This document shows, piece by piece, positions 5,094-8,047 of a DNA stretch of 64,000 nt (the stretch's first letter is position 1; every line of letters begins with the position of its first letter). Location: positions 248,001 through 312,000 of the forward strand of contig NW_026930139.1 in NCBI RefSeq assembly GCF_032062105.1, given 5' to 3'. The notes beneath the pieces are model-generated. The model saw nothing but the letters and a program-made list of their open reading frames with translations. It was not told the DNA's origin and did not search any database. Made by a program: the position numbers and the translations under genes. Origin of the DNA: Saccostrea cucullata. Taxonomy: Eukaryota.

Positions 5094-8047
5094 TCAATAG
5101 TAGACATTAGATAAGCTAAGCCCCTTGACAACATCCATGAGTCCAGTTTCAAGGTTATATAAAGATTCGTCCATCTCCGCAAAGTTCTGAATGTTGCATT
5201 CGTTCATCTGGGATCGCCACTCGGGTAACTTATGCATTCTCAGCAAGGCATCTGATATCTGCTTCTTGAAGTCCACTAAAGGATATAAACAAATTACTCT
5301 GTATCACACTGTTCAAGAAATGAATTTTTGCATAAAATGAGGAGAGGAGCTTCCATTTCAATTATACGTGTAGTTCCTCTTTAAAAAAACAGTTTTTTTC
5401 ATTCTCTGGTATTTGTTTATATGCCTGCATAATTCGCTATTATTTTTAGAATATGTGAAATATGATTTTTTAAAGAAGTAGTAACCTTTGTTCTGTGTAA
5501 TTATAGAATAAAGTTAAGATATAAATAGAAAGCTTACTGCTAAGTCGCGAATTGAAGATGATAGGATAAACTGGCAATGGTCCAAATGAAGTTAAGACTG
5601 ACAAGTTTTCACTGTTTTGTGGATTTTGTTTGAGATAATACTGCAGAACATTAGAGTCAACGGCTGCCACATCCGCCTTACTGTCGAGTATCATCCGTAT
5701 GGAGTTCAAATGGGAACCTGTAAAACAAAGGCTGAAAGCTTTAAAGTAATACACACCAATCCAGAAAGATCATTAAGTTTGGTAATCATAGATGACAACA
5801 GAGAATGAACCCTTAACAAATCAACAGTTCCATCTGACATACCTGAATGCAGCATGTTGCCAAAGAAATTGGAATTGTAGCCCATTTTTTTGAGATTGCC
5901 TAGAACTATCAGACTTCCACTCAATGAGACTGGATCATTGAAAGCAAAGGTCTGTCCTTTTAGGTCCACAAATGTGGTGTAACTTGCCCTACATATTTAA
6001 AACAAAATCGATCAAATTTCATGCCTTTTTTTAATTTGTTTGTTTTTTTTTCTTCCAAATGAAAATTTTAATGAAACTTTGTGCATGGTACCTTGTAAAA
6101 TAAATAGCCCAAAGGCCTTAATGCTCACCTGAGTTTATATGGTTCTGATGTTCATTATGCATTTTCCCCCATATACTATTGTGGTCCCGCCCTACCCTGG
6201 AGTCTTGATTTAAACAAACTTGATTCTACAATACCTGAGGATGCTCTTGTATAATATGACTTATCATGGATTTGTTGTTCTCGAGACAAAGATTTTTAAC
6301 GGATTCTTATCTATTCCTTTGTACATGGCCGCCCCTTTCTATCCCCCATTTCTAAATCCAAGGGGCATAACTCTGTCAAAAATGGGAAACTGCAAATTAT
6401 TGGAATTTTTCTAAGTCCAAGGGGCATAACTCTGTCCAAAATGTGCCAATCGTACCCAAAACCAGACTTGACCTAAATATATTCTGGTGATAAATCTGTA
6501 TACCAAGTTTCATTTCAGTATGTGCAACGGTTGTGAAGAAAATGAACAGAAACTAAGTGAACAGACTGACCTACAAACAGCAGCAAAAAAACAATTTGCC
6601 CTACCTTCTTTGAGGGGCATAACAAAACTAGAAACATAGGTAATCAAAGATTATGAAGATCACCTCGACGAATGTTATCAGTTTAGGTAATGCAAATCTC
6701 ACATCATATTTTCTTAACAGTTGGTTTTTATTCTGACAATATTCAAGCAAGTTCTGTTTAAATAGGTCTTAAAATTCATTGGGGATGGTCCTGTTCCAAA
6801 AACTTTAACCTCGTCACTCGTTTGGAAATTGTTAATCAGATCCAGCATCCAAAGCAAGTTTCGATTGTCCATCCCTAGATGCATCATCCATGCAAGTTTG
6901 GTATGGGTAGGGCTTACAGTTACTTAGGAATAATCTAGTCACTAATCTGGTAATTGTACGTCACATCCAGCATCCGAAGCAAGTCTCATAGTGTCCATCC
7001 CTAGATGCATTATCCATGCAAGTTTGGTCCCGGTAGGGCTTATAGCTACTTGGGAATAATCTAGTCACTAATCTGGTAATTGTAGGTCACATCCAGCATC
7101 CGAAGCAAGTCTGGTAGTGTCCATCCCTAGATGCATCATCCATGCAAGTTTGGTCCGGGTAGGGCTTATAGTTACTTGGGAATGGACCTGCTCCAAAAAC
7201 TATAACCTGGTCACTCATCTGGAAAATTTAGGTCACATCCAGCATCCGAAGCAAGTATGGTTACTATTGGTAGTGTCCATCCCTAGATGCATCATCCATG
7301 CAAGTTTGGTCCGGGTACGGCTTATAGTTCCTTGGGAATGGACCTGCTCCAAAAACTTTAACTGGTCACTCATCTGGAAAATGTAGGTCAGATCCAGCAT
7401 CCAAAGCAAGTCTGGTAGTGTCCATCCCTAGATGCATCATCCATGCAAGTTTGGTCCAGGTAGGGCTTATAGTTACTTGGGAATGGACCTGCTCCTAAAA
7501 CTTTAACCGGGACGCCGACGCTAACGCCGACGCCGGGGGTATAGCATAAGCTCCTCTCGACTTCATCGAGGTGAGCTAAAAACAAAACAAAAAACTTCAA
7601 TTGGAGTTCTTAAAGTTGTGTACTTACTTTTTACTACCACTGACCACCACATCAGAGTAGTACACTGGCTCATTACCTCCCTTAGTGTGTGGGTGTACAG
7701 GAGCTGCGGAACACAGTTCTAGATATTTGTTCCCTTCTTGTTTCAAACGCAAGTAGGCTGAACTGCTCATAAATCCTGATTTAATAAAATGTGTTGGTTC
7801 TAATAAAACTGTATCTGTGAGTTGAATACATAGGTTCTAAAGTTCAGATGATTTTACCGATATCGGCGTCGTCCTCTGTGAAGGGGTCCCTCCTGTCAGG
7901 GGGCGGACCTTGCCAGCGAGACTCAGTCATCAGGTACCCCTCCAGCCCTGTCACCTCCTCCAGGTAGTGCAGGAGGAGCTCAAACACCTCAATGGGGATC
8001 CCCGGGGACAGGTAAGTGATCAGGCGGAGCTTCTTAGGAGTGGACAT
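5094..8047 (-). CDS. PhnD/PtxB-like phosphate/phosphite/phosphonate substrate-binding-protein homologue, 281 aa, five coding exons
   Basis: Exons 8047-7858, 7775-7628, 5988-5843, 5717-5538 and 5275-5094 are all GT-AG with consistent phase and total 846 nt. Motifs DIGFMSS, PVYYSDVVV, DLKGQTFAFNDPVSLSG, GSHLNSIRMILDSKADVAAVDS and GPLPVYPIIF match the PhnD-type periplasmic binding protein pattern. A probable non-coding first exon has its donor at 9360. Confidence 0.85.
6105..6625 (-). repeat. Degenerate HINE-type fragments
   Basis: Contains GCTCACCTGAG, a decayed satellite monomer and a duplicated AAGGGGCATAACTCTGTC motif. Confidence 0.5.
6780..7581 (-). mobile_element. Second HINE-like family with ~120-135-bp tandem repeat array
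   Basis: About 6 copies of TCCAGCATCCGAAGCAAGTCTGGTAGTGTCCATCCCTAGATGCATCATCCATGCAAGTTTGG, a (GACGCC)n microsatellite, and terminal hairpin AGCTCCTCTCGA-cttca-TCGAGGTGAGCT followed by AAAA. A solitary decayed monomer lies at ~56826-56915 on the opposite strand. Confidence 0.75.

Follow-up and report, generated by a model that had tools for sequence, protein, structure and literature searches.

The current analysis concerns a single gene in the bivalve Saccostrea cucullata, located within a 64,000-nucleotide stretch of contig NW_026930139.1 (assembly GCF_032062105.1, positions 248,001 to 312,000; this whole stretch is referred to below as the window). The gene lies on the minus strand at 8047–5094 and is predicted to encode a stand-alone protein of the PF12974 (Pfam Phosphonate-bd) type, a bacterial type of binding protein. 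It is an intact, resident host gene rather than a contaminant, and it belongs to a bilaterian-wide, uncharacterised family of approximately 285 amino acids. A preliminary description of the window, made from its letters alone, had proposed five canonical exons encoding a 281-residue protein, and this gene model holds: each of the introns is bounded by GT..AG, the exons sum to 846 nt (281 codons plus a TGA stop codon), and the reading frame contains no internal stops. Exon 1 (7858–8047, 190 nt) begins with the ATG at 8047–8045, encodes the first beta-strand (‘LRLITYL’) together with the conserved loop ‘ESRW-GPP..R.DPF’, aligns with the N-termini of all orthologues, and ends in phase 1 with a donor GT directly after it. 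Intron 1 (7776–7857, 82 nt, GT..AG, phase 1) falls inside the Gly codon of the conserved ‘DIGF’ motif and is followed by exon 2 (7628–7775, 148 nt), which carries an animal-specific His (‘VHPH’) and the pocket Tyr in ‘PVYYSD’. Intron 2 (5989–7627, 1639 nt, phase 2) is filled with host repeats. Exon 3 (5843–5988, 146 nt) encodes ‘DLKG’ and the anion loop Ser-Leu-Ser-Gly, and intron 3 (5718–5842, 125 nt, phase 1) is placed inside the Gly codon of the invariant ‘SGSH’. Exon 4 (5538–5717, 180 nt) supplies the pocket His (‘SH’), the pocket Asp in ‘AAVDSN’ and the string ‘GPLPVYP’, and after intron 4 (5276–5537, 262 nt, phase 1), exon 5 (5094–5275, 182 nt) encodes the C-terminal helices and an animal-specific terminal Tyr-Tyr before the TGA at 5096–5094.

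The predicted splicing restores two conserved motifs, ‘DIGF’ across intron 1 and ‘SGSH’ across intron 3; since intron 3 splits a Gly codon, it is only through splicing that the family-invariant ‘GSH’/‘SGSH’ is rebuilt. All of the PhnD-type motifs recognised in the preliminary description are present in the predicted exons, with ‘YYSDVVV’ in exon 2, DLKGQTFAFNDPVSLSG in exon 3, ‘DVAAVDS’ in exon 4 and ‘GSH’ straddling the junction of exons 3 and 4. Profile searches, which were made with single exons and with full-length orthologues, support the same assembly. Exons 3, 4 and 5 match consecutive segments of the PF12974 profile, namely positions 97–138 (25.7 bits, E 8.7e-6), 144–202 (27.3 bits) and 204–242 (13.6 bits), against a gathering score of 27 bits that full-length orthologues exceed with 72–97 bits. 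The PhnD-type models of NCBIfam likewise match exons 3 and 4, single exons scoring about 23 bits. The five exon translations tile full-length orthologues from end to end. Of the positions conserved to 85% or more in a set of 45 animal members, just one is not kept in the window protein.

Several features of the locus show that the gene is resident in the host genome. PF12974 is matched at one locus only in the 1.17 Gb assembly, making the gene single copy. A dispersed repeat of about 240 bp sits in intron 2 (approximately 6380–6620); it has about 2,400 first-look candidates genome-wide, with copies 83–86% identical on dozens of other contigs, where they often form tandem runs. The same intron holds tandem arrays at 6836–7507 with units of 126 and 145 bp, which end in a GC-rich stretch near 7510–7540. 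The GC content is 46% in exons versus 37.5% in introns, with a CpG depletion like that seen elsewhere in the window. Directly beside the gene, and head to head with it on the plus strand, is SMARCB1/INI1, whose first coding exon occupies 9825–9920 (the start lies near 9825), whose DNA-binding domain exon at 13405–13554 is recognised by PF21459 (E 3.8e-20), and which extends through approximately 16272. Because the two genes are head to head with start codons only about 1.8 kb apart, they may share a bidirectional promoter. It had been argued earlier that the introns and the SMARCB1 neighbour speak against contamination, an argument that is borne out and to which the host repeat and the host-like base composition can now be added. 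The adjacency itself is real in the window, but no SMARCB1-type gene was found within 10 kb of the orthologue at the five other animal loci examined, and the neighbours of the animal orthologues are unrelated genes that differ between species. The first SMARCB1 intron also contains two near-identical open reading frame (ORF) fragments (10481–10693 and 11439–11618, plus strand), flanked by similar peptide strings at about 10660 and 11646; the pair has the appearance of an element that was duplicated or transposed.

When exon 4 was used for an exhaustive search, 195 relatives were returned, including full-length proteins of about 280–300 amino acids, and the ESM Atlas contains a eukaryote-only cluster of 67 members. 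The members named here were taken from cluster look-ups and two word-indexed profile searches. Among bivalves, orthologues were found in Pecten, Mizuhopecten, Argopecten, Ylistrum, Ruditapes, Sinanodonta, Tegillarca and Solemya, and the window exons are 52–57% identical to the bivalve proteins. Gastropods are represented by Aplysia, Biomphalaria, Lymnaea, Lottia, Patella, Haliotis and others, and the remaining lophotrochozoans by a chiton, the brachiopod Lingula and the nemertean Lineus. Further orthologues are encoded by echinoderms (Strongylocentrotus, Diadema, Asterias, Acanthaster, Patiria and Amphiura), hemichordates (Glandiceps and Saccoglossus), chelicerates (spiders, a scorpion, a tick and a mite) and insects (stick insects, a mayfly and moths). 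The family is thus bilaterian-wide and not peculiar to bivalves. No vertebrate, tunicate, cnidarian or sponge sequence appears among the named matches, which do not amount to an exhaustive search of those groups. The orthologues are labelled in databases either as ‘uncharacterized’ or with automatic transporter-type names, and literature searches on the animal PF12974 family and on twelve orthologue gene identifiers returned no paper. Accordingly, the family is visible in databases, where it already stands as ‘uncharacterized protein’, and is undescribed in the sense that no study of the animal family was found in the searched literature. Full-length, uninterrupted orthologue ORFs also occur on scallop-like contigs of 1.7–1.9 kb assembled from two sequencing runs. 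Four introns were present in every genomic orthologue examined, so unbroken ORFs of this kind can only have come from spliced mRNA.

Some variation within the family was also encountered. Two copies are present in several animals, including Glandiceps (P0268 and P0277, whose contigs are equal in length and thus probably one and the same), Bradybaena (P0157 and P0185) and Patiria (P0307 and P0029). A divergent animal subgroup (P0195, P0192, P0048 and P0122; L007:10001-10852 and L008:1587-2438) branches within the chelicerate sequences and is encoded by intronless genes on eukaryote-like metagenome contigs. In these proteins the pocket Tyr and the Ser-x-Ser-Gly loop have been lost, the latter now reading Gln-Leu-Thr-Gln, while the His, the Asp, the ‘ESR’ and the terminal Tyr-Tyr are kept. 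The subgroup may represent a retrocopy with a changed function. Separately, the exon 4 peptide HLNSIRMILDSKADVAAVD (5539–5715, minus strand) resembles the ankyrin-repeat consensus. Owing to this likeness, a single-exon sequence search of the PDB yielded only spurious matches to designed ankyrin-repeat proteins, and it probably also explains the long multi-match proteins recovered by the exhaustive search, such as P0004, P0036 and P0075.

The exon–intron structures of five orthologues (scallop, sea star, nemertean, spider and stick insect) were mapped exactly. Each has four introns in phases 1-2-1-1, as does the window gene, and the introns occupy the same alignment columns (137, 191, 250 and 318), the sole exception being a two-column shift of the third intron in the stick insect. 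The exon fragments of the window leave open exactly these four columns. In two maximum-likelihood trees, all animal sequences form one clade with a Shimodaira–Hasegawa-like approximate likelihood-ratio test (SH-aLRT) support of 99, within which the branching follows animal phylogeny, with ambulacrarians, arthropods (insects and chelicerates) and lophotrochozoans as recognisable groups. When bacteria were sampled more fully, a clade of actinobacterial proteins lacking signal peptides came out as the sister of the animal clade, with a joint support of 100, and further signal-less bacterial lineages branched below both. The animal members are therefore monophyletic and nested among bacterial proteins. 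Based upon the single animal clade, the shared introns and the nesting among signal-less bacterial clades, the most economical reading of these sequences would be a single bacterium-to-animal transfer before the bilaterian radiation, with the assignment of an actinobacterial donor being tentative. Of the two origins proposed in the preliminary description, old horizontal transfer or ancient retention, it is the former, as one ancient event, that the tree and the introns support. We regard the identity and the evolutionary account of the animal gene as nearly certain.

The nearest relatives of the animal proteins are uncharacterised signal-less bacterial PF12974 proteins, with E-values down to 1e-72. 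At E ≤ 1e-40, the actinobacterial sister clade alone numbers at least 2,090 proteins; all of those with names come from Actinomycetota metagenome-assembled genomes, including Rubrobacter. These proteins resemble the animal ones in the ‘LRxITYLAPS’ strand, the ‘SGP...DPF’ loop, the Ser-Leu-Ser-Gly anion loop, and the lack of both a signal peptide and a transporter partner. Unlike the animal proteins, the signal-less bacterial relatives have no introns and lack the invariant Glu and Arg of ‘ESRW’, the conserved His and the terminal Tyr-Tyr. No transporter partner was found beside the sister-clade genes at the loci examined. Among members of the signal-less Chloroflexota/cyanobacterial clade, no neighbouring gene family is common to more than 9 of 75 loci, and no transporter is found among the neighbours. 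This clade, which also includes betaproteobacterial members, comprises at least 587 loci in species-representative genomes (L011–L090, alignment A3), carries an invariant Cys-Gly at the position of Cys106 of the arsenite-binding protein AioX, and amounts to a large, uncharacterised bacterial family of its own.

Within one actinobacterial lineage, the PF12974 gene is situated inside a same-strand catabolic cluster, which was found in nine genomes or contigs. Upstream are genes for an amino-acid dehydrogenase and a 2-oxoacid dehydrogenase complex, and downstream are genes of the 4-hydroxyphenylacetate/homoprotocatechuate pathway, the full order (L095:1421-12694, L111–L116 and L121) being ELFV dehydrogenase-E1a-E1b-E2, the PF12974 gene, then flavin reductase-GntR-DHDPS-FAA hydrolase-aldehyde dehydrogenase-HpaB. 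Between cluster-bearing genomes the neighbouring genes are 80–97% identical and the binding-protein gene only 63–82%, so that the latter evolves faster than its neighbours. Six more distant members were examined, four of the same class and two on metagenome contigs, and none of them has the cluster. Because it is confined to one closely related lineage, the catabolic operon constitutes a lead toward function rather than evidence of it.

It had been suggested that the window protein stands alone, with neither a signal peptide nor a lipobox, and the evidence from the family agrees. The protein starts MSTPKKLRLITYL, which contains no signal-peptide-like stretch and begins 6 residues before strand 1, and in the model of the scallop orthologue described below, the N-terminal residues form the first beta-strand of the fold. 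Orthologues similarly start a few residues before this strand. In the scallop-like mRNA contigs, an in-frame stop precedes the ATG with no Met between them, and no sequence conservation was found upstream of ‘LRL’ among the orthologues aligned. The same situation can be observed in bacteria: among Chloroflexota/cyanobacterial loci having an upstream stop within the locus, 49 of 76 have no more than 20 open codons upstream, and one actinobacterial gene starts 8 nt past the stop of the preceding gene. Judged from these sequences, the predicted cytoplasmic state was passed down from bacterial relatives that already lacked a signal peptide, rather than arising in animals.

A structural model was built with AlphaFold2 (AF2) for the scallop orthologue P0171, which is 53% identical to the window exons, from an alignment of 68 rows. 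It reached a predicted local distance difference test score (pLDDT) of 95.6 and a predicted template modelling score (pTM) of 0.92. Foldseek matched this model to ArrX, AioX, PtxB and PhnD with E-values of 1e-23 to 1e-15, and the two-lobed class II binding-protein fold, whose absence would have spoken against the preliminary description, is thus found in the orthologue model. By both structure and sequence, ArrX and AioX are the closest: ArrX (Foldseek E ~1e-22; PDB profile E 2e-23), AioX (~1e-21; 1.7e-11), PhnD (~1e-17; 3e-9) and PtxB (~1e-17 to 1e-18; 1.7e-7). Neither curated NCBIfam cut-off is reached, since the PhnD equivalog TIGR03431 (cut-off 261 bits) gives 79.4 bits for P0171 and 63.6 bits for P0153, and the TIGR01098 subfamily (cut-off 112 bits) gives 93.4 and 84.8 bits, respectively, with the bacterial sisters at 84–101 bits. 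Because they score below both cut-offs, these are proteins of the PF12974 fold but not PhnD. The earlier label of ‘PhnD/PtxB-like’ is therefore apt as far as the Pfam family and the class II fold are concerned, but the closest characterised relatives are ArrX and AioX.

Comparison with these systems is instructive with regard to both likeness and difference. ArrX of Chrysiogenes arsenatis (PDB 6x6b, 6xl2 and 7l22) is the best solved match, with a template modelling score (TM) of up to 0.80 for the fold and about 20% sequence identity. Like the animal protein, it is not part of an ATP-binding cassette (ABC) importer, and it shares Tyr138, the Ser-hydrophobic-Ser-Gly loop, the His and the Asp. 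It binds arsenate at 1 µM and phosphate at 150 µM (PMC5908839). Unlike the animal protein, ArrX is periplasmic and signals via the ArrS/ArrR two-component system, whereas the animal protein has an extra N-lobe loop, the conserved His and the C-terminal Tyr-Tyr, and has neither a signal peptide nor a two-component partner. AioX of Rhizobium sp. NT-26 (PDB 6esk, 6eu7 and 8ed5) has the same fold and shares the equivalents of Tyr131, Ser161, Ser163, His192 and Asp210, the last of these being Asp in AioX and the animal proteins and Asn in PhnD. It differs in that its Cys106 is Ser in the window protein and its Tyr88 is Trp, and it is both periplasmic and two-component coupled. No histidine kinase/response regulator pair (XSR module) was found beside the gene in the window or at the orthologue loci. 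PhnD of E. coli (PDB 3p7i), which binds 2-aminoethylphosphonate for the PhnCDE importer, belongs to the same Pfam family and fold, and the equivalents of its Tyr93, Ser127, Ser129 and His157 are kept. However, it has a 26-residue signal peptide, its gene lies beside phnC and phnE, and its amine-binding Glu177 and Asp205 are not conserved in animals. No PhnC/PhnE-type partner adjoins the window gene, and none was found at the orthologue loci or the bacterial sister loci examined. PtxB and HtxB (PDB 5o2j, 5lv1 and 5me4), which bind phosphite and hypophosphite, have the same fold (TM 0.70–0.77) and small-oxyanion pockets, and are periplasmic components of ABC importers. Yeast Thi5 (PDB 4h6d) is an intracellular eukaryotic protein of the same general fold, but it ranks only 49th with Foldseek (E ~4e-11, 13% identity), belongs to a different Pfam family (NMT1), and has catalytic residues that are not common to the animal protein.

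The AioX pocket is formed by Tyr88, Cys106, Tyr131, Ser161, Ser163, His192 and Asp210, and its Tyr/Tyr/Ser/Ser/His are common to PhnD (Badilla et al. 2018, PMC5908839). To compare these positions, the 45 animal members were placed in a motif-anchored alignment with E. coli PhnD, whose numbering is offset by its 26-residue leader. The anion-holding core is strongly conserved, with the window protein having the consensus residue throughout: Tyr in 39/45 animals at PhnD Tyr93 (AioX Tyr131, ArrX Tyr138), Ser in 43/45 at Ser127 (AioX Ser161) and again at Ser129 (AioX Ser163), Gly in 41/45 after the loop, His in 43/45 at His157 (AioX His192), and Asp in 42/45 at PhnD Asn175 (AioX Asp210). Two other positions differ. 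PhnD Tyr47 (AioX Tyr88) is Trp in 26 and Phe in 10 of the animal proteins (Trp in the window), and PhnD Gly65 (AioX Cys106) is variable, with Ser and His in 10 each and Cys and Thr in 7 each (Ser in the window). The two acidic residues that bind the amine of 2-aminoethylphosphonate (2-AEP) have been replaced: at Glu177, Asn is found in 25 and Thr in 11 (Asn in the window), and at Asp205, Tyr is found in 30, His in 5, Gln in 5 and Phe in 4 (Tyr in the window). Several polar PhnD pocket positions are hydrophobic or aromatic in the animal proteins. Due to the differences at the N-lobe Tyr and AioX Cys positions, the predicted pocket is not identical to any characterised one, and because Glu177 and Asp205 are replaced by Asn and Tyr, PhnD-style recognition of 2-AEP is not expected. 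Other features arose on the animal stem, namely Glu41 and Arg43 of ‘ESRW’, His92 and the C-terminal Tyr-Tyr; the two terminal residues are Tyr in 39/45 and 43/45 animal members and are absent from bacterial relatives. The ‘SGP...DPF’ loop is older, being found in the actinobacterial sisters.

Taken together, we consider it more probable than not that the gene encodes a soluble intracellular anion clamp of the PF12974 class II binding-protein fold, acting as a sensor, carrier or buffer. A mechanism along the following lines can be envisaged. The bilaterian ancestor would have acquired the gene from a bacterium in which the product was already cytoplasmic and uncoupled from any transporter. The single-domain ‘Venus-flytrap’ would close its two lobes upon a small anion held by the Tyr, the Ser-x-Ser-Gly loop, the His and the Asp, which is the pocket constellation that ArrX uses for arsenate and phosphate, AioX for arsenite and PhnD for the phosphonate group. 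Binding would presumably be read out via the animal-specific surface features, namely ‘ESRW’ with its invariant Glu and Arg, the conserved His and the Tyr-Tyr at the C-terminus, and the role would be that of a sensor, carrier or buffer as opposed to an importer component. As for the ligand, a phosphate- or arsenate-like tetrahedral oxyanion or a phosphoryl head group is the foremost candidate, albeit a tentative one. An organic, possibly aromatic, carboxylate is a somewhat weaker possibility, and a ligand of some other class seems unlikely. A carboxylate is in play because the operon lead fits with the acetate and malonate found in the pocket of ArrX crystals, the aromatic pocket positions and the Tyr-Tyr-COO− terminus.

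Several observations weigh against an anion clamp of this kind: 1) Thi5 shows that there are cytosolic proteins of this fold that are enzymes, 2) the N-lobe Tyr of PhnD and AioX is Trp or Phe in animals and the AioX Cys position varies, 3) the ligands of PF12974 members also include sterols, ATP, thiosulfate and glycerol phosphate, 4) the divergent animal subgroup persists even though its Ser-x-Ser-Gly loop is lost, and 5) the absence of the family from cnidarians, sponges, chordates and non-animal eukaryotes means only that none is among the named matches, as no exhaustive test was made.

A more specific version of this proposal is that the protein is an invertebrate intracellular receptor for a small anionic metabolite, either phosphate/arsenate or a tyrosine-derived aromatic carboxylate, descended from one pre-bilaterian transfer and having the invariant terminal Tyr-Tyr carboxylate as a putative latch or pseudo-ligand for the binding cleft. 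We view this as possible but doubtful. The main rival to the anion clamp, likewise possible but doubtful, is the idea that the protein is an enzyme built upon the binding-protein fold, in which the Tyr/Ser/His/Asp pocket would hold an anionic substrate, while the animal-invariant Glu, Arg and His would be catalytic. Enzymes that use the binding-protein fold include Thi5, MqnA-type dehydratases and prephenate or cyclohexadienyl dehydratases. A cytosolic protein that stands alone, lacking a partner gene in animals and most bacteria, is what one might anticipate of an enzyme, and the invariant charged residues gained on the animal stem, the structural match to Thi5 and the position of the sister-clade gene in a catabolic operon of one actinobacterial lineage, where an enzyme would be expected, all lend the idea some credence. 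However, the closest matches in both sequence and structure are without exception binding proteins that do not catalyse, the operon link is limited to that one lineage and absent from the six more distant members examined, and Pfam and NCBIfam profile searches did not detect the catalytic motifs of known enzyme families. For these reasons, an anion-binding sensor, carrier or buffer is preferred.

A narrower proposal, and one we consider improbable, ties the protein to the 2-AEP lipid metabolism of bivalves, in which it would carry or sense phosphonate, phosphite or phosphate in the manner of PhnD or PtxB. The match to PF12974, the retained phosphonate-oxygen contacts (Tyr93, Ser127, Ser129 and His157) and the phosphate binding of ArrX, the closest solved relative, are all compatible with such a function. 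Yet the equivalents of Glu177 and Asp205 are not acidic (Asn and Tyr in the window), the scores fall below the cut-offs for PhnD (79 vs 261 bits) and TIGR01098 (93 vs 112 bits), and both PhnD and PtxB are far more distant than ArrX and AioX. Furthermore, the family is also found in spiders, scorpions, ticks, stick insects and moths. The link to bivalve 2-AEP lipids drawn in the preliminary description is thus unsupported on two counts: the amine-binding acidic pair is replaced, and the family is not restricted to bivalves.

An extracellular protein, which would reach the exterior through an upstream signal-peptide exon or by unconventional secretion and bind an environmental or haemolymph anion, is very unlikely. 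Such an exon is hinted at by an acceptor-like pyrimidine run and AG (8048–8062, minus strand), the AG lying 4 nt upstream of the ATG, and by the annotations of Solemya and Tegillarca, which carry N-terminal extensions of 20–55 residues. The unspliced DNA has an in-frame stop 13 codons upstream, and the acceptor-like site may be the acceptor of an intron in the 5′ untranslated region. Against secretion are the dozens of orthologues that start within a few residues of strand 1, the scallop-like mRNA whose upstream in-frame stop is followed by no earlier Met, the signal-less bacterial ancestors, and the lack of anything conserved upstream of ‘LRL’. Lastly, an artefact (bacterial contamination, a pseudogene or chance ORFs), which the resemblance to bacterial families and the fragmentation of the assembly into 23,869 contigs might have suggested, is effectively refuted by the four canonical introns at positions common to five other animal genomes, the host dispersed repeat in intron 2, SMARCB1 next door on the same contig, and an intact frame that keeps the family-conserved residues.

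Class II binding proteins in animals are mainly extracellular receptor domains, such as those of glutamate receptors and class C G protein-coupled receptors, or transferrins. A free cytosolic member of the oxyanion branch that is conserved across Bilateria would, if true, represent a different use of the fold. As an old bacterium-to-animal transfer, the gene is also unusually well supported, since it combines a single animal clade, intron positions common to five phyla and an identifiable signal-less bacterial sister group. On a practical level, the automatic names currently attached to its orthologues, such as ‘ABC transporter ... substrate-binding protein’, ‘phosphonates-binding periplasmic protein’ and ‘glutamine-binding protein GlnH’, are misleading. 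Since orthologues exist in tractable species, including the purple sea urchin, Parasteatoda, Plodia, Aplysia and Lingula, the function of the family is directly testable. Should the metabolite-receptor reading prove true, these animals would possess a sensing module unlike any described in animals and apparently missing from vertebrates.

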